The notes: generated by a model not told the origin, from the letters alone. DNA of 64,000 nucleotides from Paragordius varius (GCA_964247055.1 OZ176052.1:9486001-9550000), one strand, 5' to 3'. Positions 787-18,029 are shown, counted from the stretch's first letter. Program-made: numbers and translations.

Positions 787-3700
787 TCATTGTCGTATTT
801 GTGTTGAATTGCTGGATGAAATTGTTTGAAGCGGATAATTGTTTTGAGGACATGGCAGAGATGTACGGTATAAGTTTGTGCCAAAATTTAATTTGGATGA
901 TGTAGGTGAGAGCATGTTTGTACTACCGCCCGTATAATTCATAAGATTATTGTAATAAGATGAATCTGTATGGAATTGAAAATTATTTTGCCCCGAAACA
1001 TGATAAGGATAAGAGTGTGATGTTGCAGGCCCCAGAGGGGTTTGTGAAGATACCAGTTGTTTAGAAGTTAAGGGGGAATTGCTATTAATAGTAGCATACG
1101 TTTTATGCTGATTATGGTTCGGTTGTAAGATGGTATTATTGTTGCTCCCAACAGTAGTGGTGTTATTATTACTACTGCCAATACAAATACTACCATCAAA
1201 TGAACGTCGTAATGAAGGGTTAGGGTTATGATTATTAGAATTGGATAATGGATGATATGAGGCACCTCCACCATTGTATAAAACAGCAGCGTTTTCAGGA
1301 GCCATACTCGAGTGAAACGCGTGATAATTTGTCAAATTATTCCCAACACCGCCAGCATAGAAGAGAGATGAATACGGGTAAGGAGTTCGAAATTGCATGG
1401 GCACAACAGGAGGATTACTGTTCGATGAGGATCGGCTTCGAGCCTTTACGACACCCGGATTTGTTTCATCCAGATCCAAGATATTGTGATTATATGCAGC
1501 ATGATTTGTGTTATTGTTGGGGTACGGGTTATTGAAACCTGTGGAGGAAAGATTGATGCCATCACCATTGTTGTTAGTACTACCAATGTGTTGTTTGTAT
1601 GCCGCGGCGGCAGCCATTGCGAATGCATTTGGTCCAACCATCATTGGGTGATACGGGGATGCCCGAGGAAAGCTCGTAGGATTCATCAACAAACTTTGAT
1701 TGTGATACGACGGTAGAGGGAGGGAGTAATGTTGTTTCGTACTCAATGTATTATTGGTACTATTGCTGTTATAAGTATGATTAGTACTAATGAAATTATT
1801 GTTGGTTAGTAGGGATGGATTGATAGTTTGTGAAGTAGAAGAATGGTAATATGGTATATGGTGCGTACTAGAACTCCTGCTACCCATAAGGTTGTGGTTG
1901 TTGGTTGAATCATAAGCGGCCATAACAGCCGATAACCAAGAAGATGTAATGACATTGGCGTTATTATTATTATTACTATGGCTAGGAGCAGGGTTATTCA
2001 TCATTAGGTTTGAAAAATTTGAAAAAGATAGTTGACCACTTGGGTGTGAGGACTGAGAATCCGTTTGATTCGCATTTTTGTTATTGTGAATTAACGGCAT
2101 GGATATAATAGATGAGTCGGATATTGTAAATGATGTTGAACAAGGCGTAACGGATCCGGTTTTCCCATTCTTTTCTGTGCTATTGCTGGTGTCATGGTTC
2201 AAAGAACCAATTGATTTGTTCGTTGTGTGGGACGATGTATTAACCACGTTAGATTTATGATTAGCATCTTCACTAACAAAGCTACTGGTAGTGGTATTAG
2301 CATTATAAACCTGTTTATTAATGTTTGCTATTACACTATTTATGGCATTTTCAATGTTTTGATCGACGCGGTTTTTTTCCACAGTATCATCATAATTACT
2401 ATTTTGTGCCTGATGATGGCTACTTGATTCATTTATTTCAACAATTGTTTGCGTTGTGGTTAAATTTTGATCAGTGTTAGAACTCTTACGATTTTCCGTA
2501 GCAGGTTCAGTAGGAATAGAGTGGTTGTTTGAAAGTCCAGTGGCGGAAGAAGTCGTAATCAGTGTCGAAATGACTGGAGGCACTGGGCTACTGCCAGTCG
2601 CAAACGAAGAATTGGATTCATTGTAACAGCTGGCTGAATCGACCGTCGTTGTTCCCAACGGAGTGGCTCGCATATTATTGTTACTGCTATTTGTATTATT
2701 ATTATTACGTTTCTTTAATGGTTTATCCCAATCCAAATTTTTCGTAACAGGATGATGCTGCTGTAATGGAGGCACAATATTAGCGCTTTGTGCAGTTTCC
2801 GTACTAATAGATGCTAATGTCACATTAATAGACTGGGATTCTGAACCTTTAGATTCATTCATTTTAGTTGATGTTTTGGCTAATGATGGTAGGGTGTTAT
2901 TAGCAGATGATGATTGAATGCTACATGTTTCTTCCTTACCAGTTTTGATGTCAGACGTGTTGGTAGGAGGTGGAATACAAGAAGAATTTTTCAAGTTTGC
3001 AAGCGTTAGAGATGCACTAAGCTCCATATCAGTTTTTTCTAAATTATACACATAAAATAAATAAAAAAATGCATAAATATAATCAGTCTTAAACTAAAAT
3101 GGGCAAGAAACTGGACACTACCTGATATACTTCGCATTTTTGTGTCACCGGTACTGCTCGAAATAAAATTTGTCAATGTAACCGATGTTTGAATTGTTGA
3201 TGTCATAGTATTAGATGATAAAGAGGCTATTGTACTGTATGGTGGTGCTTGTGAATGCGACAATTTGTGACTTGGGCGACATTCTTTGTTGCTGCGTTTA
3301 AAGAATTTTTCAGGTTTAGCGTTTTCTGCAACATTTTCTTTTTCCGACTAAAAAATATCAGAAAATTAACATATGCATTTAAAAGATGTATTATTCGCTA
3401 CGCTATCATATCGTTTGTAAAAATAATTATATGTTTTCTTTTTAACCAGCATTTACTGTATAAAAAATATTTGTGAATAAATACATGCAACAAATATGTA
3501 GCAACAATAAATTAATCACTCAATAACGATAAACATTTCAAAATAAAAGCCCAAAAAGTAAAAATTTTCAGGGTTATGATACCTTAATTGGTAAAGTGGC
3601 ATTCATGGCCGTAGTTTGACTCAAAGATTGCGGTATGTGGGATTGCAAGCTACAAAATTTGAGTGTTGCTGGTAGGGTAGTCGACGAGTTAATCGAAACG

Positions 3701-6700
3701 CCTACAGAACTTGTTGCAATTACATTTACTTTTTCGTTGCTACATACGGTCAAGGTGTTATCTTTTTGGCCAGAATTATTTGTGCTGCAAATAGACGTAA
3801 GGATATTATTGGACACAACGGTGGTATTTGAAACTGTTCCAGTTATGACGGATTTTTCTGCCTTTGATGTAGTAGTATAACTGTTATTCGTCGCTGTAGA
3901 TGTGGATAAAGCGGAATGGGTAGTCAACAACTGTTGTGGGGTACAAGTTAAAATCGCTACGCTACAGTTATTGTGTTTAGTAGTGTTATTTGAATTGTTG
4001 GTGCATTCAATCATAGCCTTAGCAATGACACTTTTAACATAGGTGGCACAAGCCATGGGATCCTCCAAACCCGACAAAGATTTCGCAACATTATTAGGGG
4101 TGGTTGTAAAGGTTTGGAAGGATTTTACATTTTCAGTGTTATTTATGTTGCAAACTGACATTGTTAAAACTTTAGGGTTGTTTGATGGGATATTTTTATT
4201 AGTGTTACTCGCTCCTAATATTAAATTAGCTGTAGGGTTTGGTTTTAAGGGGTGTGTGGATGTTAAAGCAATTAAATTCCTATTATGAGATGAAGAAGGA
4301 GCGGAAGTTGTTAAATCGCCCATAGTTTTAATGGGTTTTGGGTAATTCGCAGCGTTATTGTTAGTAAGCTGGGCGAATATATTGTTAGCAAGCATGGTTG
4401 AAAATGTATTAGATGACATTAAAGGTAAGGTTGAAGATATATTTACCATTTTATATCCATTGTTCATGGATGTGTTAACGGAGTTTGGGATAGAGTTTTG
4501 CATGAGTGAAGCAAAATAATTTGATACAACCAGCGGGTTAATTGTTTGTAATGTTGAAAGGGTAATGGTAGGTTTTGCTACGTTAATGGATGAAGTATTC
4601 TGATTTCCACCAGGTATATTACCTTTATTTTGATTATTTCCAAAACTATTTGCTATGGTCGTGGTACCCAACATTAGCGGTATCAATTGATGGAGTGGCA
4701 ATAAATCAGTTTTTCCAACAAAATTATTCATACAATTACTATTTGCTGATGATGTGCAAGTCGTATTACCATTGGTTTTTGTAAAAACTGAATTAGTTGA
4801 TGATGATGTTGAAGATGATACTATGAGTTTTGATATGGGCAAAATTTTTGAATACGCAAGTTGATTAATGTTAGCCATGGAATTAGATGCGGACATAACA
4901 TTCTTGGACCCTAGTAAGGTTGTCGAGGTTACGCTTAACATACAAGTCGTAGATGTTGAAGATGATGGTGATTGATGTAATGTATGGGTGGAGGGAGTAA
5001 ATCTCCCTAAAAGTAATTTATTGAAATCATTTATGCGCTCTTTCAACTCACAATTCTTGGCACTAAGATATTCTACCTCAGTTTCGGCTTTTATAAGGGA
5101 TGCTTTAAGATTATGTTGGAGTTGTACGACATTCTTGGCAAAATTACTTAGATTCACGGGCTTAGTAATGGATATATCCAATTTATTCATTTTAAACTAT
5201 GGATAATTTGATAAAAATAAATTAGAGGGTGTATTCATATAGATATTTCCACAAAGACCAAAAAACATTAAAATAAAACAAACTTGTAATAATTTGGATA
5301 TTTCGGACATAATGTCACGCTTTGACTGTTCAGCAAGGGCTATTTTAGCGTACAAACTTTGGTTAGTTTTGGATTGCAAGGCTAAATCTGCCGTTATTCT
5401 GGCAGGTGGGGTAACTGATTTATTTAAGGCCATGGATAAGGTACACCATTCATCAAAGATTAATTCTAAACAAAAAGAATGAAATTTTAGACAAGCATAA
5501 GATAGCAAATTCTAACCGTTTAATTAACCGGCCTTAAGTTTCAAAATACCACATTTCATTACAATATGTTATCAGCTACTATTTATTTACTTGTGAAAGA
5601 TTTCAATTTATCAAACGTTTCTGTATCCATGTTGTCCGGTTTTGACAATACCAGTTTGTCTGCATCGTTTTGGTTAATCAAGGTGTTATGAGCTGTAATT
5701 TGCATTATTTTAGATCTATTTCCATCTGTGGCATTATTATTATTATTATTACTGGTAATTGTACCAGATATAACGTTTTGTATAGATGCATCGTAATTCT
5801 GTAGTTGTTTACCACCACCATCACCACTTAGTGTTTGATACGTAGAGTTGAGTGAGTTATGAAGTGTTTGGTCAGGTTGCATAGAATGCAACAAAGTATG
5901 TTCATGAAGGAGATCAAGCGAAGATTCAAAATCTGCAAAGAGATAAAGTTTTTGAAATATAACATAAAATATACGGGGGAAAAATTGATAAAAAAAATAA
6001 GAAAAAGCGAAAATAAACCTTCAAAGTTTTTCTTACGCCTCTTCTTTTGAGTGAGGAGGTTAGTATCGTTCAGCGTGCTAGCGGAATCTAAATTCCCGCT
6101 ATCTTTGGATAATTTAATGTTGTTGGATGATGGAGGGGATTCGTTGTTAAATAGGAAAGTAGGTAGGGGTGGTGACACAGGATTTATAATATTTTTAGTA
6201 GGCGAGTTCTGTTATTTATACCGCACAATATAAAAATTACATTTAAAGTGATATTTTACATTTAAAATAATTGAAGTAAAATAAATTTTATATTTAATAT
6301 AATCAAGCTAATAAAACCAAAGATTTTAACTATAAATAAAATATAAGCAAACCTTGTTGTGTGCAATAGAATTTATATTGGGTGATGTTTTAACAGGAGA
6401 ATCGATTTGAGTGATGGTAGAACGTTTGACAATTTTCTTTTTACCATCGGTAAATTCTGTATCATCAAAATTAACATTAATACAAAAATTGATTCAAACA
6501 TAATGTGTATATGCGATATAACAAGTGTAATTTGAATTAAAAAAATAAAATAATTTCAAACCTAAATAATAATCTGAACGATCTGTAATTTTTTCGACTT
6601 TTCCTGACAGGCCAAAAAATTCACCAGTTTTGCTAATTTGAACAAGGGAACCAATCTATATTGTTGGGATTAAACAAATTATTAAAAAGATTTTTTTTAT

Positions 6701-9700
6701 TAAAAAAAAAGTTTAAAAAATAAGGTCCAAGTACCTTGATTGGACCCTTGATTTCATCTTGATTTACAGTTACAAATTTATTGTCCTTCAAACGAACCTA
6801 ATGGAAATATTAATTAAATATATATATTTTTATTGCTCTAAGCGTATTATAAACCAATAATGACTTTTAGTTTTCCAGTAGCGTATGGCATAAAACAATT
6901 TTAGTCCATAAAATAATAAAAATGTTTTTTTAAAAAATAACCCTAGTTGTATATACACATATCCATAATATCCCCTTCTTATTTTAAAAAAAATTTTTTT
7001 ATTCTTTTATGGACTAACATTGTTTTATGTCATACGCTACTGTAAACTAATTTTAAAAGATTGAAAATGTTACATAAAACAAACTTTGATTTTTAAATTT
7101 AAACGAATCTTCTTAACAAAGGCTCTTTTGTTTAATTGAGGTGTGTTGGAGGTTTTATCGATTTGATATAATACATGCTTGCCATCCGGTATGTATGGTA
7201 TATTCGATAATACTGACTAAAAAATAATAAAATTATAAATGAAATATGAAAATAATTTCTCAAATAAAAAATATTTATTACTGTTATTGAGGATTTTCGA
7301 ACGGGTGATGTAACATTTGTTTTGGAGTTTTTACTGTTCTGTAGTGGTAAATATTCATCTTCTAATTCCATATCTTGACTTTGAGGTGTGTCATTTGTGG
7401 TAAAATCTTTTTTTTAATAAAAAGTAAAAAGTTTGATTATATTTTTACATCTAGTATACACACTTGAATAATTTAAATTCGCCCTAATAAATTATGTTTT
7501 TGAAATAAAAAATTACCTATATTTTTTGTTTTGAAAAGTAGGATTTTGTTTAATATTACATAATACAGACAAAAATGATAAACTGCCTAAAAAATAATGA
7601 AATAATTTAGATAAGCCCTAAAACAATTATTCAGGGAAAATTTAAATTGTTTAAAGACAAATATAAATTGTTCAAGGGTGAATTTGAGATGTAAATGGTT
7701 ATTGACACAAGTGTTTATAAATTAGAACATAGAAATCATACTTTGATATGTGCCATCAGTTTTTGATGAGACATTTTGATCTTGAGATCCTAGTCTAGAT
7801 CTATAAATACAAAAATTGTAAAAATGAAAATAAAAATGAATCTTTTTAAATCCAATAAAGTTTATTCCAAACTAGATATCAATAATATTTTACTTCAAAT
7901 TTAAGTGTTTCGCTAAAAAACTTAACTCCTTTGTTAGCGAATATATTTTTAAATTAACAAAAAAATGATTGAGAAGTAATAAAATTTTGTGCGAAAAATA
8001 ACCATGCAAATAAATTAATCCAAATGTGAATGCTAAACATTAGAGATCAAATAAAGGCGTTACAATATACTGACCAAAGCTTTCACCTTATACAGTATAT
8101 GTGAGTTATCAATAATTTAAACCCAAAGCCAAACAATTTTTCCTTCTCTGTCAGCCCTGAGCAGACGATTGACTTTAATAAAAAAAGTCAGAATGTAAAA
8201 TCAAAATTTGTGCCACACCTTCTCCTAATATTTTACAGCGGAGAAAAAATTTATTTTAATTTTACTTTGGTTTAGTAAAAAAATTAATTGTTTAATAAAT
8301 GGAAAAACTAAAGCCTTAAAGTAATGGTATTAATAAAATATTGCATATTTAACTTTACACGATACTAAAAAGAAGTAAAATATGTCACATCACTGCTGCT
8401 GCTATTATATTTATGGAAAAGATAAAATATTTACCTGGATTGTGGCACAGTTAAGGATGTAGAACTTTTAACCGTGGTGGAAAAAGAGGATGTATTAGGT
8501 ATTGATGTTTTATGGAGAAAAGATTTAGATCGACCACCATAGTTATGTAATAATAATGGTGTTGTCGACGAATGTTGGTTGTTATGATGATATGCAAAAT
8601 CAATATTACTGGTTGCGCTCATATTCGAATTATTAATCAATGTATCTTCATCAGCTAAAAAGCTTAATGAAGATGATGGAGTTGATGAGGTGGACGAAAG
8701 ATTGCTACAAAACGATAAATGTGTTATTAGACACTTGAATTTATTAGAAACAGTTTTATAATATATGTATATATATACAACTGTGGAGTCAAATCTATCC
8801 ATATACAAATCATTTTAATTTAATTTAAGAACATAAAAAATAAATGCGTTAGATTCAATAACCACAATAACAAGTATAATTAAATAAAATTTCTGCAAAA
8901 CAAACTACCCATCCTATACAAAATTAGTATTTAACCTGTATGATGCAGTTTTTTTGTCGTGGATCCGTTTTTTGTTTTGGCTCTTAATTTTATTGAATGA
9001 GTTACTACCAACTGTATCCAATAAGGAATCGGTACTATGAATGATTAGTTTTGAAAACTTATTATTGGCAGATGGTATAAGACCCGTTGATGATGGGCTG
9101 ATGAGACCATTAGGCAAAGACTGGTAAGAATGTTTTCTTTGGCGATTATGGTGGTTAGTGGTCATTGAAGTTTTAACCGATAAAATATTTGTGGATGACA
9201 ATGGGGTAGGCATTAATACACCTCCCATCCCAGGAAGCTGTGGTGAATTATCCTTTTCATTGTCAAACAGGGGAGATGTTGAGCGTTTTAAGGATAAATT
9301 ATTATTTATGTTGTAATTAGCAGTCGACATTACTAAATGGTTGACTCTCTTATCTTGCCCGTAGTCAGTAGTTTCATTTTCAGTGTTGTTATTGTATAGC
9401 AAACTTTCTTTCTTAATAGGTTGCGGTAAGATTGGTGTAGTGATAGATGTCGTCCCAATACCTGAAAACACAGCATGATGATTATGATGGGACGACAAAG
9501 AAATGACCGGTTTCTCATCAATCAGATCCTTAGTGTTAATATCATGATGTTGATTTTGTTTATTGAGCCTTTCTTTTGCCTTTTCACTGGCATTCAAAGA
9601 TTTAATGTTTGTCGAGTGGGATGAAGAAAGGTGTGAAGATGATGTGGTATCATCCGTATCATAATTATTTCTATGATCTCTATGTTTGTTTTTATGACGA

Positions 9701-12700
9701 ACATTATTATTCTTATCATGACTATTGTTGGGTAGCGATGAATTCGATAACGTTGAATACATGACATCACCATTAGTTAGTTTCGAGGTTTGCTGATGTT
9801 TTCGTTGTTTATGCCTATGAAGGATTATACGTTGTGGATTATCATCTCCCTCATAATCTAGGAGGGCATCATCATTGAGGCGATGATCTCTAGAGCCGAT
9901 TCCACCTCCCCCCAAAGAGGAAGCATTACTGCTATCCCGGGACGATGGTCGTTTCCGTTTGAAATCCTAATGAATGAAAACGTTAAGAATTAGATATTAA
10001 ACGAACTTAAATATTGACAGATGACCGATATAACCGACAGACGCAAAATTTTTGTTCGCCATGGTTTAAGTTTATAAGCTTAGACACTTAGTAAACATCA
10101 TTTAAACTTTTTACTCGCAAAAAATAAAACATTTTATATGTATCATTAATTAATTTAATTTAATTTATTCATAAAATAATAACATTTTCAATAATATTGA
10201 ATGAACCCCTTATTTTATATTGTGTCAAAACTTTGGTTAACAAATATAAAAAAAAAGTTTTCCCAACAAGTAAAATATTTAAAACTAATAAGTGGCAAAT
10301 ATATCGGGTAAACTATATAAAGCTCATATAGAAAAACTAATTGTATACCTGATTTTGATTAACATTGTCGTAATACTCTTGAAGCTATAATCATGAAAAA
10401 AAAAGAATTAATGTCATAGTTTAAAAAACACAAGTAAATGTAGAATTATAAAAATTAAAAAGTTGAGAAAAATTATATATAAATATATACCAATGATCGA
10501 TCAATAACTTGGATGTAATAAGGTAGAGCGTTTTGGGTCCAAGAAAATGCCCCAGTATCGCTCATGTGCTTAGAGACGCGCATCATCGCAGCCGGATCTA
10601 AAACAAGAAAATTTTAAAAAAACATGATTCAAATATGTGCATTACGGATTTTAGCTAAGATTTTGCATGCACAGCTTGTTTATTGATTCTATTAATATTT
10701 TAAATGTTAAGTGGGGGAAAATTTAAATGGGTGTGAGCAAGTATGAATTTTTTCCATATTTCATCATGCCCATCTAACCAATAATTTGGTTTATTGTATG
10801 TGATATAATTTATCTAAAACTTAAAACTATATCCAAGAATCATATAAATACATACCATCAAGATTTCGGTCTGAAATACGAAATGATTCAGGGCGAAAGG
10901 GATATGTTGAAATTATACGTGTATCTAAAACAAAAAAAAACGATAATATATAAATTAAAAAATCATGTAACTAATTTAACTTTGTAGTGATATATAATAT
11001 GGCTTACTGTCTCCCAAATTATGGAAATGACTTTTGAGTTTGTGGTTGACTTCCCGAAAAGCAAAATTATTAACGTATATAATTGAAGATTGGTATATGA
11101 GATCAATAAATTGGGGTTCAAGAAAATCACCAGTTATCAACTATCAAGAAAAGAAATAAAAATACTAAATTTTTGAACAATAAAAAAATTGATATTGTCA
11201 TTAATTCCATATGGTGCAATAAATATGATAGAAATCAAAATGTGGCCTAAAATTTTTGGTAATGACACATGAATCAAAATTAAAAAAACATATATTAATG
11301 AATATTAATTTTGAATTTTACAAATATTCCACATAAAGTAGATAATATTTCTGTAAATTATGATATTGTATAACCTGATATTTGCGATACTTTTTGCCAA
11401 ACCATTTCATAACATTGGCGAAATGTTTATCCATACTGAGAGCATAATGGGCCCTTGTGGATTCTTTCTCAATCCCTATGCAAGTTTTGCATTGGGTGGA
11501 TGCTGCTACTTGTAAAACTATATGGCCAATACCTAAACAAACGAGATTGAAAAAAAGAATGAATCATCAAAAAAAAAGTTTGACAAAATAGAAATGGCAC
11601 TCGTTTTCAAAATCTTTCATTTTAATATTTTGGTCAATATTATTTAGCGTCATATTAATCCATTATATGGGATTAATGTGGAAAAATTATTTAAGATTAA
11701 CAGAATAGAATAAAAACAATGGGCATATTAAAGTAAAAAAAAGAATTGACAGTGCATTTAAATTTATTTTTAGGACAGTTGATACCTAAAAATATTTTTT
11801 TTGTATTTTATGCCCATATTTTTCCCAATCCTGTTTTTTCTCCCCTTACTTTTTAAAAAGGGTTTTTTACGATTTATTCCTTTAATTATTTTGTAACATT
11901 CTTTTTATAAAAGGATTTCTTACCACTGCCTAAATCTATGAACGTGTCGTCCGGTTGTATGTTAATTTTCTGCAAAATTTTTCGGACCTGTTCATAATTA
12001 GTCTCCCCATACGTCTAAAAAATTAATAATTATTATTAATAATTTTGTGAGATTTGCCGCCTAAGATATTTTGAAATTATATTCATAAAAAATCCCAAAT
12101 ATTTAGTTATGAATCTATTTATCATATTTAATATTATAAAAACACCTTTTTTATTTTATTCCACAATTTTTACAAAGATTATCTTTCCTTGCTTAAGGCA
12201 AAAATAAATAAAAATAATAATAATATATCAAATAATATATATAATTTATATTTTATGTTTAAACAAATTTCTTTTTTATATATATATTTATAGTTAACAA
12301 CATTACAATTTGTTTATAATATTTATATTATACATAGAAAGAAAGCTCAATGAACATACAAACAAAAAAACAGGTAAAAGTAACAGGTAAATGTAAATTT
12401 GTAAAAGGTTATATACATTTGTATATTTTAAGGCGAATATATATATAAAATATGTATAATCTTAAGGCCTATTATGTTATCATTACATGATTTGTATATC
12501 GTCGTTAGGAGGTAAAATTGTTTATAAAAAATATAACTGTGAACAAAAAGTTGAATACGCAAAATTTTATTATACATTTAAAAAAATACTCAAATATATC
12601 CAACAAAAAATTTTATGTTTATTATAACAAATCATTAGATCATCCACTTTCATATGGATAATGCTTGTTTAAAATTAACCTTACACCAAAAAAATTTAAT

Positions 12701-15700
12701 ATCTTAAGGCAAATTTTTTATGCAACACATACATAATAATCTCGTTGTGTAATAATAAAATTTGTAATCATTTCTATACATATATATGCCTACAAAGGGT
12801 GAAAAGAATGGGGGTGGATATATTATATTTATCTAATAATGAGAGTTATTTAACGTGTAAAACGATGAATAAAACTTACTTCAGGTAACGCTGTAGGTTT
12901 GCACTTATTAAGTAACAAGGGTTGAGTGACTGCCCTCGTGTACACAAAATCTAAAATCCATTTGAGCAATTCGCTGGATGCTACAGGGTTCCCACACACC
13001 ATGCTTGTTCCCTTTGACTGTTAACATCAAAAACATTTTTTTAAACCATGACATAAAAAAAAAATTTTTATGGCGAACAACAAACATTAAAAGTAAAAAA
13101 AAATCGATTTTACAAGGTAGTATAGGATAGATAGCGTAATGTATAATGGTCAAGAGACAGTATGACTGCCTTTTTTACTTTGTTAACTTATGCGACAAAG
13201 GTGAAACAGCCAAAATCATTATTGTATGATAAATCATAAATATTTCAACTATCATTATATTTACTATTATATTATTATTATTATTAATATTGTTTATAAG
13301 GTGATTACGATGATGAAAATATATATATAAATCGTAAAGGTCGCGCGGTCAAACATGTCACAACAATATTATATAGATCTTTCATATACATATTATTACT
13401 TACAAATATATTTATATGATATGAAAGGTAAAAAAATAATCATAACGATCTCAACATTCGAATAAAAAATGTCGGCATTTAAAATTATTTTTTAGCCACC
13501 TATTGTTGTATATGTACATATCTTTTACATTGCAGACGTTTTATTCATCATAAAAAATGATTGCATAATGAAAGAATTATATAATCGCGGTTCAGTATAT
13601 ATAAAGTTTTTGAATATAATTAATATTGAAGTTTTTAGTTTGGTTTTAAAAAATTAAATATGTATAATAAAGTGTAAAAAATATTGATAGTTCACAAACT
13701 TACCATAGAGAGAAAAGTATCGATTACGTGATTGAATCGGCCACACAATGCTTGCATATCATCATAACTAGAAAAATTTATTTATACATATTATTTGATT
13801 AATAAATTCTAAGTTGTTAATAAACTCACTCGGCCATAGTTAATATTGTTTTACAGAAAAGAAAAAAAACCTAATGTAACCATCAATTTTTTATCTAAAA
13901 CCACTAAAAACAGTTATTGGGGGACAGCTATAAAAAAAGCATTAAAGTTTCCTCTCTCCACCAAATCCTACAGAGATGACAAATCATAAATATACATTTA
14001 CGCTATTTTTTTTGGTTAACATAAAAGGGAACAACTATTACACCATATACACATAACAGAAAATGATGAAGGAAAAATCGATAAAAACGAAAAAAAAAGA
14101 AATTACAGTAAATTCGATAAAAATACTACACGCTAAAAAAGCAATTTCATGTTAGATGAAATATTTTTTTACATTTTCATTAGCCAAGATTCAGGTGCCT
14201 GCTAACGATGATGAAAAACAACGTAAATATTGTGGTGTGTGCACAGAGAATCTCTATCTCTGCATTATGTTTAATGCATATTATATTGTATATATAAAAT
14301 CAATATATTTTAATTATCGGATTTTTTTTATGTTATACGAGAAACATTACAAAAAATATTGGATAGCAAGCAGTACGCCCCCGTATCTCTCCTCATAATA
14401 TATACTACTAAATCAAAAATTAAATGTATCAATCAATACGCTAAAATTTAAATCAATATAATTTCAACGCTAACTAATAAGACTGGAAATTTGGGCATAA
14501 TACAGGCTAAATTAAATACCTCTCAATAACCACACAAGTCAATAGTAAAATCAACATAGAGCATATGTTGGTTGTGGTCTTACAAAAAGAAACTATAAAA
14601 AATAATTACGAATATACAAACCAATATTAACATATAAAAGTGTATATGTTCAAACTTATCTGAGATACAAATAAATATCGAAAATCAATAAATGTATAAA
14701 GCTGCACGTAAAACAAATCTATGGTTAAAGATTGATATGTTTTACTATTTGCATTGCATGTTTAATATCCAAGTCTCTCTCTACTTAGTAAAATTTATTT
14801 TATATATTATTATATTTTTAAAGCATTATTTACCGATAAGAAAAAATGATTTTTTAACTCATTTGTTGCAAATTGATATACATATAAAACATGATTATAA
14901 AAAAATAAAATCAATATTTTAATTATTATTATTAAGAGCAAGAAAATATAGGGCAGTCATAGTAGAAAATGGAAATTAATTTGAAAATAAATACCTGGAA
15001 CGATCGATTGGCTTAATCACTTTTATGTCAATTATTGATTTGAGCACTGAATACTCCTTACAAACCCATCTATAAATATATAAAATATTTAGAAAAAGTT
15101 AGACATAAAATGTTTCATGGGATTTTTAAATAAACACTAAGTTTCGTTAGACATATACTTTTAAACTATATAAATCATAAATATTGAATGATAAAGTATA
15201 ACAGAGATTTATTAAACTTTTATCTGTAATCTAAAACTTTAGAGAGGATGGTTTATAATGTTACATATATTTTTTATAATATATCGATTTTTCAGGTTCA
15301 ATTTGTAAAATGTTTAATATAATCTATATCTATATAGGAAATATAATATAAAAAACCACCACAACAATGTTTAAGCAATTCTTTGCACAAATGCATGTAA
15401 AATTATATAAATCAAAAAACCACAATTTAAATTATATGTAATGTAAAATGTTTGCATTTTTGATATACAGGCGCGCGAAATCATATGTGTACCTTACATA
15501 CAAAATACGCATTTGTAAAAAAGAAAAACAATAATACTACACATCACATAGTACAACCAATTTTATAGCTTGAAGCTGTTTGAAATCAAAAAATTTTGTA
15601 AGATAAAAAATATGGATGGATGTAATCTTAAAATTTAGCTTTTTTTACAAAATTGTAAATGATTAAATTTTGACTTTTTGGCATAAGGATGGATAATTAA

Positions 15701-16841
15701 ATTTTTAAACGCGCATTCGCGTTACAGACATGATCGTATGTGACCAACCCAAATTTTTTTAAGATATTCCCTAATGAATGGAGTGTTATTTAAAATAAAA
15801 ATTTTTAAAATACGAAATATACTGACGTTATATATATATATATATATATATTTTGAAAAGAATTATGACAGCGCTGTAAAAAAAATTTTGATTCAAAAAA
15901 ATCCTCTGTTTTATTGCTTTTATAGAGTTAAACTTAATACATGAAGGCTCTAACATTTTATCAGAAGTAACAGCAATGATGGAAAAACTGTTTAATGTTG
16001 GGTATGGACTCCTTTATAACGCACCACTATAATTTTTTAAAACTCTACCATATATAAAATAATGATAAAATATGAGACACGGTAAAATTCACCATATTTT
16101 GATAAATAATCCCAAAATATGCAAATCTATACATTATATTATTATTTACACACCATATGAACATATGTGTATTAACTTTACACAGCCAGTTTAAGCCTAC
16201 TTTTATTTCCATTTAACAATAGTTATTGTATAAAACATACCACATATAACAAACAGTAGTGGGAAAATAATATTTATACAACAGTTTTTTTTTCATTTTA
16301 CTCATATAAACTAATAAACTATTGTAATAATGTAAATAATGAATATAAATTACACAACTGTAAAACGAAGAAAAACTCCAAATGCATCATAGCATTATGT
16401 AAACACACATGATGAGGGTATGACTATGCAAAAATTATCAAAACGCGCGAGCATAAATAATTTAATTTACAAAGTCGTTGGTTTATATATTAGCGAACAA
16501 AAATTACATTAACATATTACATACAATATTAAATGGTCATATCATCAAATAAGCCAGCCAGGCTTAAAAAAGCATATGATTTCTTTCATAATACACATAA
16601 GCGTTATATAAAATGATTAATGTTAAACTGTGCCAAGTGTCCCGTGATTTATGTATATATATATTATATATATACATAGATTAGCGATTTTATATTATAA
16701 AACTTAAATTTTTGCAACTAGATTATAATTTGGTATATTCTATTATTATACGCTAAAAATTTTACATAATGTTTAATGTATGTTAAAAACGAAAATAAAA
16801 TAGAAATGGACCGAGGTTATAACGCAAATTACACACACATA

Positions 16842-16874
<33 letters not shown>

Positions 16875-17319
16875 TAACATACATTTAAAAAACTCCTAAT
16901 TGTTATTTTATGTATGCAATTATAATATTTAACATTGTGACATATATATTATCTTTCATTGATCTTGTTTAAAATGCCAATTTTAGATTAAATAGCGGCA
17001 TACTATATATATATATATATATATATATTTGAATTCTATGATAAAAGTATATATTCGAATAGACCTAAAATAATCCCATCAAACCTATATTACAATAAAA
17101 AAATAGTTGAAACAATTTATTTCTACAAAAAATAAAAGATTACTTTAACAATTGAAAAAAAAAATATGTAGAGCCAGCCACCTATGTGTGAATATATATA
17201 CTATCTTTTTATACAATATAATATATAGATATATTGTTAAATACTGTGTGAGCATATTTTTATTTTTGATAAAAAAAATTAAGGTAAAAAGATTCATGTC
17301 GACTACTATCATATTTTTT

Positions 17320-17354
<35 letters not shown>

Positions 17355-18029
17355 AACAAAAATAAAAATGCATCCTTTTTTGTAAAACTTTTTACCATTG
17401 TAAAATAAATATAAGGGAGTAAAGGATAGAATATTGTTTACATTTTTATTTTTTAAGTATATGAAATGAGATGTTTAAGGTGTTTTTTGGTTTATTTAGT
17501 ATGCGTATTTTATTTTATAAACTATATTATAAAAATATTTTATAAATAATCAATATTATATATTATTTTTTATTTTATATATCAAGATTAATAAAATATG
17601 TATCAGAAAGTAAATTATTGATTAGATATATAAAAATACAATAATATAATGTGTATGAGTAACAAGGTATTCAGGCAAAATACTTGGACTTTTGTGGATA
17701 GAAAAAATTTAAATTGTTACAGTAGCCTTAAGCTAAAAAAGTATTTGATGACTGGCATTATAAAAATATTATCAGATGGACAAAAATTTTTGGAAAAAGT
17801 TTTAGAAAGTGTTTATTAATTTTATTATAAACCGATAATATTATAGATTTCAATAAAAATATAACCATAAAAGATGGTAATTTTTAAAATTGTATCAAAA
17901 ATATAACCTAATGGTTTCCATGATGGAATCCGATGGAAGTTTATTATTAACAGAATCATTCCATTCAAATGTGAGATAGCCTTGTCCACAAGGGCTTTTC
18001 AATTTAAGTAACGGTTTATGATCAGCCAT
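787..18029 (-). CDS. DOT1L: Histone H3K79 methyltransferase DOT1L (grappa) with internal ARID4-like Tudor domain, coiled coil and long low-complexity regions; 24 exons, about 2558 aa
   Basis: Phase-consistent GT-AG exons (minus strand): 17908-18029, 14995-15069, 13704-13767, 12880-13017, 11924-12014, 11375-11532, 11008-11140, 10856-10924, 10491-10597, 10349-10384, 8936-9966, 8435-8704, 7742-7800, 7282-7406, 7085-7216, 6735-6797, 6562-6655, 6353-6456, 6019-6208, 5591-5932, 5284-5465, 3583-5196, 3122-3347, 787-3038 (7677 nt including stop). The translation gives LKLKSPCG...METIRWVCKEY...YGETNYEQV...FIDLGSGIGHIVLQVAA...GIEKE...MKWFGKKY...GDFL...IYVNNFAF...RIISTYPF...FSWTQNALPYYIQVIDRSLLQEYY, collinear with the DOT1L catalytic domain (YGE, DLGSG, NNFAF motifs). 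The segment LLQFKMNKLDI...VVQLQHNLK (5284-5465 and about 5050-5196) resembles the DOT1L coiled-coil region. Confidence 0.93.
6403..7198 (-). other. ARID4A/B (RBBP1)-type interdigitated double Tudor domain encoded by four DOT1L exons
   Basis: Spliced translation PYIPDGKHVLYQIDKTSNTPQLNKRAFVKKIRLNLKIKVRLKDNKFVTVNQDEIKGPIKIGSLVQISKTGEFFGLSGKVEKITDRSDYYLEFTDGKKKIVKRSTITQI. It aligns with the recalled ARID4 N-terminal Tudor (PYLTVGTDV...VKVKV...VEVQDDHIKGPLKVGAIVEV...[27 protein letters not shown]). Confidence 0.8.
6868..7049. mobile_element. Foldback/MITE-like element in a DOT1L intron
   Basis: About 45-bp imperfect inverted repeats: 6868-6913 (tagttttccagtagcgtatggcataaaacaattttagtccataaaa) and 7005-7049 (ttttatggactaacattgttttatgtcatacgctactgtaaacta). 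Confidence 0.6.
16842..16873. repeat. (TA)n microsatellite, one of many (also about 15830, 17004, 17327, 20109, 24150, 25506, 62520)
   Basis: Directly visible TA dinucleotide runs. Confidence 0.9.

Follow-up and report, generated by a model that had tools for sequence, protein, structure and literature searches.

The window, a stretch of 64,000 nucleotides from Paragordius varius (GCA_964247055.1 OZ176052.1:9486001-9550000), carries on its minus strand the gene of a DOT1L, the predicted H3K79 methyltransferase of this horsehair worm, into which a double Tudor domain of the ARID4 type appears to be built. Taken as a whole, a DOT1L with such an in-frame cassette, belonging to the horsehair-worm lineage, is the best explanation of the data (probability about 0.78). 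That DOT1, Tudor and coiled coil follow each other in one DOT1L reading frame is, judged from the sequence, highly probable. The four-exon cassette would lie within the long disordered stretch that links the catalytic domain to the coiled coil, and would be read in the frame of DOT1L.

The open exon chain of the gene comprises 22 exons, which run from the ATG at 18029 to 3583 and add up to 1733 codons without a stop (Table 1). All exon borders are AG/GT, and the phases are consistent. The initial annotation had claimed such an unbroken, phase-consistent chain from DOT1 via Tudor to the coiled coil; an independent rebuild agrees with it, and the domain positions match its numbering: DOT1 at residues 1-331, the Tudor exons at 827-957 (core about 832-940) and the coiled coil at 1158-1239. 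Haplotype indels in the predicted exons (in the linkers at 7343 and 9197) are multiples of 3, while most of those in neighbouring introns are not. The closest database protein is a DOT1L model of 2097 residues from Gordionus sp. m (Nematomorpha), here called P0002, which has the same insert. It is annotated as an 'uncharacterized protein' with a DOT1 domain and is a BRAKER/TSEBRA prediction with RNA-seq hints, not a cDNA.

Table 1. Exons of the DOT1L gene in the window and counterparts of the Tudor exons in Gordionus sp. m (positions in locus L001, on OX940786.2)
Feature	Position	Strand	Evidence
DOT1L exon 1 (ATG at 18029; starts MADHKPLLKLKSP)	17908..18029	-	tblastn to P0002 aa 7-40, 91% identity; GT donor
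DOT1L exons 2-10, remainder of catalytic domain up to aa 331	10349..15069 (15069-14995, 13767-13704, 13017-12880, 12014-11924, 11532-11375, 11140-11008, 10924-10856, 10597-10491, 10384-10349)	-	PF08123 matches, AG/GT borders
Linker exons 11-14, aa 332-826, low-complexity and basic	9966-8936, 8704-8435, 7800-7742, 7406-7282	-	open, AG/GT, phase-consistent
Tudor exon T1, aa 827-870, 132 nt, phase 0-0	7216-7085	-	AG/GT; tblastn to P0002 667-701
Tudor exon T2, aa 871-891 (VRLKDNKFVTVNQDEIKGPIK), 63 nt, phase 0-0	6797-6735	-	58% identical to P0002 701-724
Tudor exon T3, aa 892-922, 94 nt, phase 0-1	6655-6562	-	48% identical to P0002 722-754
Tudor exon T4, aa 923-957, phase 1-0; end of double Tudor (FTDGKKKIVKRSTI) and short tail	6456-6353	-	AG/GT; aligns with P0002 753-789
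Exons k and l, aa 958-1134, with conserved motif DFESSLDLLHEHTL	6208-6019, 5932-5591	-	AG/GT, phase-consistent; tblastn to P0002 873-909
Exons m and n: coiled-coil module (aa 1158-1239), then low-complexity tail	5465-5284, 5196-3583	-	coiled-coil profile; 53% identical to P0002
Additional C-terminal exons of the DOT1L gene, approximate borders	790..3347	-	tblastn: P0002 1583-1601 (3311-3255, 89%), 1675-2094 (3027-1648)
Gordionus counterpart of T1	L001 27210-27353		same exon
Gordionus counterpart of T2	L001 28068-28130		63 nt, same borders
Gordionus counterpart of T3	L001 28243-28335 and one base of split codon		same borders and phase

The assignment to DOT1L is based on both ends of the chain. 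Matches to the DOT1 profile PF08123 are spread over several upstream exons and follow the order of the profile (22-52, 52-107, 106-148 and 176-205), and the joined window protein reads FIDLGSGIGHIVLQVA at the SAM-binding DxGxGxG motif. Profile and motif together make up a full DOT1 domain; P0002 covers positions 1-205 of the 205 in PF08123 (E 3e-57). Downstream of the Tudor, a coiled-coil profile built from 95 non-nematomorph DOT1Ls matches window residues 1158-1239 with 21.4 bits (E 2.5e-8), the maximum of 500 shuffles being 8.1 bits, and P0002 matches it at 981-1069 with 20.9 bits. Both worms, then, have the DOT1L coiled coil behind the Tudor. In mammals, this module has been reported to bind AF10. 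The initial annotation had argued that the Tudor is bracketed by two DOT1L parts, and the DOT1 matches upstream and the coiled-coil match downstream confirm it. With DOT1L/Grappa, the animal H3K79 methyltransferase, the gene shares the complete N-terminal catalytic domain including the DLGSG SAM motif, the basic stretch after it, the conserved coiled coil further on and the long low-complexity tail. It differs by a double Tudor of about 110 residues behind the catalytic domain and ahead of the coiled coil, and by the start of the latter, which is at residue 1158 in the window protein and 981 in Gordionus; in the rest of the surveyed DOT1Ls it is at about 410-690.

The region 6353-7216 on the minus strand consists of exactly four short exons, T1-T4. 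All four are bordered by an AG acceptor and a GT donor. Spliced together, they give an open stretch of 131 codons (393 nt), and the cassette is symmetric (phase 0-0) overall. The joined window Tudor matches P0002 666-752 with a phmmer E of 6.6e-20 and 47% identity. In a search of the PDB, P0002:650-790 in turn hit the Tudor of ARID4A (2MAM, residues 6-103, E 2.4e-11) and that of ARID4B (7DM4, residues 7-106, E 6.9e-11). These matches span both lobes (HTD-1 and HTD-2) with about 35% identity and indicate homology; the same search returned ARID4A/ARID4B only: no Tudor of the JMJD2 or any other type was retrieved. The link of the window Tudor to ARID4 is an indirect one via Gordionus, as the joined window domain was compared with P0002 only. 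Single exons T1, T2 and T3 yielded no ARID4 match in the PDB sequence search, being too short to score (21-44 residues). When the window exons were aligned to P0002 as four separate rows in MAFFT, T1 and T4 were misplaced, and this alignment was discarded.

The initial annotation had proposed an ARID4-type Tudor, and a match in a profile search was to be expected. The sequence matches to the solved ARID4 domains bear out the former; as to the latter, Pfam found no Tudor family in the single window Tudor exons, in P0002:640-800 or in full-length P0002. Since Pfam is not known to include a model for the N-terminal Tudor of ARID4, this blank is not counted as evidence against a Tudor. The neighbours of the domain in a protein language model are Tudor/Agenet clusters, which is a lead only. 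On the whole, sequence homology supports the putative Tudor in DOT1L as a predicted interdigitated double Tudor of the ARID4/RBBP1 type.

The cassette and its intron positions are conserved in a second nematomorph genus. The Gordionus locus has four Tudor exons with the same borders and phases as those of the window; in ARID4B numbering, the introns lie between K39 and V40 (phase 0), between K61 and V62 (phase 0) and at V92/F93 (phase 1). The exon borders in the catalytic domain, too, fall at the same residues in both worms. Identity between the window protein and P0002 varies by region: it amounts to 81% in DOT1, 14-18% in the upstream linkers, 48% in the Tudor and 53% in the coiled coil. As to origin, exon shuffling may have brought the cassette from an ARID4-like gene into an intron of phase 0, already in a common ancestor of the two genera. 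The symmetric phase 0-0 cassette is consistent with such shuffling.

The initial annotation knew of no Tudor in human, fly or yeast Dot1 proteins. In the survey, a Tudor insert was found in 0 of 166 other DOT1 proteins, 95 of which have the coiled coil; among the latter are molluscs, insects, a myriapod, crustaceans, a tick and a fish. Full-text searches of the literature found no paper on a DOT1-Tudor fusion. The DOT1L of horsehair worms is a genuine variant, specific to this lineage, of an enzyme already known.

With ARID4A/ARID4B, the worm protein has the homologous double Tudor in common (residues 6-106, E ~1e-11 for the Gordionus copy). It differs in the position of the domain, which is internal (aa 827-957 of the window protein) instead of N-terminal, and in the lack of RBB1NT/PWWP, ARID or chromobarrel domains after it. 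The latter had already been claimed; Pfam indeed finds nothing but DOT1 in full-length P0002. As a whole protein it is not a member of ARID4A/B; the domain alone is common to the ARID4 family. A histone-modifying catalytic domain and a Tudor module in one polypeptide are also seen in JMJD2A/KDM4A with its hybrid double Tudor, and SETDB1 (triple Tudor) likewise joins such catalysis to a Tudor-type module. The catalytic domains differ: the worm enzyme is a methyltransferase of the Rossmann type (DOT1), not a JmjC or SET protein. The JMJD2 Tudors are likewise interdigitated (PMC8038949). However, the worm Tudor has no PDB match to them.

Could the Tudor exons be an artefact of the gene model, i.e., a separate nested gene or a decaying ARID4 fragment in a DOT1L intron? 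The blank in Pfam would fit, as would the RNA-labelled sequencing runs, in which no contig over 5190-11150 (5961 letters) was found; matching contigs occurred only in runs that behave as DNA. Yet T1 has no Met and is preceded by a stop codon, and T4 stays open up to its donor, so that the exons cannot stand alone. Moreover, all four are open in both species with the same borders and phases, they are far better conserved than the upstream linkers, and DOT1L-specific parts lie on both sides. An artefact is very improbable.

A more serious objection is that the exons are coding and optional. They could be an alternatively spliced cassette, the main DOT1L enzyme then being devoid of Tudor, or they could belong to an isoform driven by a promoter inside the gene, close to exon 14, where an in-frame Met (DMELEDEY) might start a protein with Tudor and coiled coil and no catalytic domain. 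Skipping of the cassette would leave the frame intact, because its 393 nt are divisible by 3 and both flanking introns are of phase 0; T1 (132 nt), T2 (63 nt) and T3 plus T4 (198 nt) are likewise divisible by 3. The RNA-labelled runs, having no contig on the gene, are compatible with skipping. Word searches with the Tudor retrieved P0002 alone in the length range of the whole protein and nothing for a 211-residue piece; neither transcript-derived fragments nor ARID4 proteins came up in them. The Gordionus model, the only one available and built with RNA-seq hints, nevertheless has all four exons in a full-length protein, and their strong conservation implies that they are translated in some isoform. 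We consider optional exons distinctly unlikely and prefer a Tudor that is a regular part of DOT1L.

The function of that Tudor is a matter of analogy. The Tudors of ARID4A/B bind DNA, not methylated histone tails; in ARID4B, the contacts are K19-R21, K37, Q52, W88, R102, S104 and S105, of which K19-R21 (L12 loop) enter the major groove and W88 the minor groove (PMC8038949). According to the alignments, the basic surface residues K28, K37, K39, R103 and S104 of ARID4 are retained in the worm Tudor. Of the contacts, R102 is changed to K, Q52 to N and, in either worm, W88 to Asp. In place of K19-R21 in the L12 loop, Gordionus has E-N-D, and the loop of the window protein is extended by 7 residues. 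As in ARID4A-like proteins, there is no charge at position 50. Unlike ARID4B, which has T, G and A there, both worms have Phe at positions 48, 73 and 74. Both domains are basic, with a pI of 10.0 and 9.2.

A basic Tudor of this kind may act in cis as an additional anchor of low affinity to chromatin, most likely by binding DNA or nucleosomes as in ARID4A/B, which would prolong the dwell time of the enzyme on nucleosomes. This mechanism is a tentative one, with the odds somewhat against it. With the same architecture, the Tudor might instead recognise a histone mark or a partner protein through its middle lobe, HTD-2. The loss of the DNA contacts K19-R21 and W88 and the three Phe residues in both worms would suit this alternative, as does the precedent of the JMJD2 double Tudors, which read H3K4me3 via an aromatic box in HTD-2 (PMC8038949). 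It is opposed by the strongly basic character of the domain, by the retention of K37, K39, R103 and S104, and by PDB matches exclusively to ARID4A/B, which are not readers of methylated tails. A single-sequence AlphaFold2 model of P0002:660-775, made without alignment, is too poor (pLDDT 32) to support either the fold or a cage. Reading of a mark or a partner is thus rather unlikely, and DNA anchoring remains our preferred, if tentative, mechanism.

DOT1L is thought to be recruited to chromatin by partner proteins and H2B ubiquitin. To our knowledge, no chromatin reader has been recognised within DOT1L itself, which is unusual among histone lysine methyltransferases. We also know the ARID4 double Tudor from ARID4 proteins alone; the worm DOT1L is possibly its second context. 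The gain of a domain is lineage-specific here and concerns a little-studied phylum, the Nematomorpha, for which the loss of many metazoan genes has been reported. It is unlikely on present evidence that the Tudor, perhaps captured from ARID4, functions as a reader of a histone mark or of nucleosomal DNA and renders DOT1L a self-targeting H3K79 writer. If true, however, the recruitment of horsehair-worm DOT1L would be achieved in part via its own reader, as opposed to the separate AF10 and AF9/ENL-type adaptors used elsewhere. A natural DOT1L with a built-in Tudor in two nematomorph genera offers a test case of whether tethering in cis affects the placement of H3K79 methylation.

The DOT1L gene of the window can be read on the minus strand as a chain of 22 exons, starting with an ATG at 18029 and extending to 3583. 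When borders were set from the DNA, all of them proved to be AG/GT and the chain was stop-free over 1733 codons; more C-terminal exons, to about 790, were detected by tblastn of P0002, the DOT1L gene model of the horsehair worm Gordionus. The upstream exons contain PF08123 (DOT1) in profile order 22-52, 52-107, 106-148 and 176-205 (Pfam). Minus strand 8000-5200 was read directly, and its stop-free pieces were listed; here four Tudor exons (T1-T4) join to 393 nt, i.e., 131 stop-free codons. The limits of the initial annotation, 6353-7216, match these borders exactly, and its domain numbering agrees with the rebuilt chain.

Features of the window DOT1L and of its Gordionus counterpart
Feature	Sequence	Position	Strand	Length	Phase and flanks	Basis
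Tudor exon T1	window	7216-7085	minus		0-0; AG before, GT after	
Tudor exon T2	window	6797-6735	minus		0-0; AG before, GT after	
Tudor exon T3	window	6655-6562	minus		0-1; AG before, GT after	
Tudor exon T4	window	6456-6353	minus		1-0; AG before, GT after	
DOT1 catalytic domain	window DOT1L protein	aa 1-331				
Tudor exons	window DOT1L protein	aa 827-957				
Exon m	window DOT1L protein	starts aa 1135				
Gordionus Tudor exon 1	L001 (genomic locus)			144 nt	0-0	P0002 mapped onto locus
Gordionus Tudor exon 2	L001			63 nt	0-0	P0002 mapped onto locus
Gordionus Tudor exon 3	L001			94 nt	0-1	P0002 mapped onto locus
Gordionus Tudor exon 4	L001			113 nt	1-0	P0002 mapped onto locus

The introns measure 65-2838 nt, the two longest (2838 and 1227 nt) being the first two; micro-introns are not seen in the 22-exon gene (3583-18029). 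Two introns, T1-T2 and 13-14, are peculiar. At 6782-7179 and 7379-7776 the contig depth of the DNA runs rises 100- to 1000-fold. Many short joints occur there, along with 'opposite strands' joints at about 6916-7010, and ends are loose at 7044 and at 7699. Both stretches resemble repeats of high copy number that are probably palindromic (MITE-like).

P0002 (2097 aa; CAK9303194.1 / XP_065321511.1; Gordionus sp. m RMFG-2023) is the single close full-length match to the 53-residue DOT1 exon at window 11375-11533 (-), where it is 79% identical (full HMMER search). It is a BRAKER1/2 + TSEBRA prediction using RNA-seq hints, not a cDNA. By tblastn it is collinear with the window from 18008 down to 1648, with the Tudor exons in order, and across the catalytic domain and the Tudor the two genes are split at identical residues, including at the borders of all four Tudor exons. 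The G+C content is about 22-35% in the window versus 26.93% in the Gordionus assembly. Identity between the two proteins varies by region: 81% in the catalytic domain, 14-18% in the upstream linkers, 48% in the Tudor core (47% for the Tudor with correct splice sites), 22-31% in the post-Tudor regions and 53% in the coiled coil. The identity of the catalytic domains, the shared exon borders and the similar A+T richness make it very probable that the window belongs to a second nematomorph. The alignment shows the predicted Tudor as a conserved island amid fast-evolving linkers. Two short motifs are also kept in otherwise fast-evolving tails: EKFFKRSNKE[CS]RPSHKL at 3255-3311 (-), whose 19 aa show 89% identity with P0002 1583-1601, and DF[EQ]SSLDLLHEHTL at 5890-5932 (-), which opens exon l and is strongly conserved. 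Neither matched any other DOT1L searched; they may be partner-binding motifs.

What kind of Tudor is it? Taken one at a time, the Tudor exons of the window lack the length needed for a score. Joined, they find one match among 150 DOT1 representatives, P0002 666-752 (E 6.6e-20). The P0002 piece 650-790, run against all PDB chain sequences, matches the Tudors of ARID4A (2MAM, residues 6-103, E 2.4e-11) and ARID4B (7DM4, residues 7-106, E 6.9e-11) and no other Tudor type, which supports the earlier assignment to an ARID4/RBBP1-type double Tudor. The match spans both interdigitated lobes, with about 35 identical residues per 100 in the ARID4B alignment. The ARID4 link of the window Tudor itself, as judged from these alignments, is transitive through P0002. 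The P0002 piece has no Pfam match; to our knowledge, Pfam holds no model for the N-terminal ARID4 Tudor. The nearest protein-language-model clusters are Tudor/Agenet (0.80-0.88), which is a lead only, and AlphaFold2 without alignment gave a pLDDT of 32, too low to confirm the fold.

That the predicted Tudor belongs to DOT1L is supported by its downstream neighbour. DOT1L orthologues have in common a coiled-coil module of roughly 113 residues, for which a profile was started from another DOT1L, P0017, and rebuilt from 95 sequences with P0002 left out. This profile matches window aa 1158-1239 with 21.4 bits (E 2.5e-8), where 500 shuffles reach 8.1 bits at best, and P0002 981-1069 with 20.9 bits. 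The Tudor is thus bracketed by two DOT1L-specific parts, the DOT1 domain upstream and the coiled coil downstream, as had been proposed. Contigs of the sequencing runs X1 and X3, the latter under a second species label, lie on 5190-11150 and are a few percent off the window. Their indels in predicted exons (6126, 6202, 7343, 9197) are all multiples of 3, so the public data include a divergent haplotype or strain, or else a sister species. The indels in predicted introns (5979, 6236, 6258, 7248, 8776, 8799, 8814) are not multiples of 3, with the exception of one of 3 bases at 8886. The runs covering this stretch cover introns and exons alike and therefore behave as DNA. Among RNA-labelled runs that share this species label, no contig lay on 5190-11150, and word searches for transcript-derived fragments found none. 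Since the length of T1-T4 is a multiple of 3 and the flanking introns are of phase 0, in-frame skipping is possible, and the four exons could be an optional cassette.

An HMM built from the two worm Tudors and run with all filters off on 167 DOT1 proteins scores P0002 only (next best: E 0.1, 5.6 bits). Of these proteins, 95 others span the would-be insert interval, because the coiled coil is present in them. The named proteins come from bivalves, gastropods, flies, a moth, a beetle, a mayfly, a millipede, branchiopods, a tick and a fish; no nematode, priapulid or tardigrade was recognised in this named set. Within this survey, two nematomorph genera have the Tudor insert and the other DOT1Ls lack it. 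One surveyed protein is odd in another way: in P0001 of the cricket Gryllus longicercus (KAK7873280.1, 757 aa) the DOT1 domain is present twice and complete both times, at 113-315 and at about 530-730, which reflects either tandem duplication or the merging of two gene models.

As to function, the ARID4 proteins offer some guidance. Lacking the aromatic box, the Tudors of ARID4A/B show no binding to methylated histone tails; they bind duplex DNA weakly (KD about 10 to >100 uM), mainly via the lobe HTD-1 (PMC8038949). In ARID4B, DNA is contacted by K19-R21, K37, Q52, W88, R102, S104 and S105, and E50 weakens binding (PMC8038949). The worm Tudors keep K28, K37, K39, R103 and S104 and replace R102 by K and Q52 by N, which are conservative changes. 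Position 50 is Ser/Thr, uncharged as in ARID4A-like proteins and unlike E50 of ARID4B, and both domains are basic (pI 10.0, net charge +12; pI 9.2, net charge +4). In contrast, K19-R21 correspond to E-N-D in Gordionus and lie in a loop that is extended by a 7-residue insertion in the window, and both worms have Asp in place of W88. Positions 48, 73 and 74 are Phe in both, instead of the T, G and A of ARID4B. The best reading, to which we would give roughly one chance in three, is that the Tudor binds DNA or nucleosomes as a cis chromatin anchor and would thereby lengthen the dwell time of DOT1L on its substrate. That it instead reads a histone mark or binds a partner through the other lobe, HTD-2, is a serious alternative, judged somewhat less probable.

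The cassette comprises four exons, is of symmetric phase 0-0 and lies inside a disordered linker, which fits exon shuffling as a possible origin. The observation made initially is confirmed, and its interpretation is partly supported. No description of a DOT1-Tudor fusion was found in the literature searched. Within a known enzyme family, the predicted Tudor-bearing DOT1L represents a new variant that is specific to its lineage.
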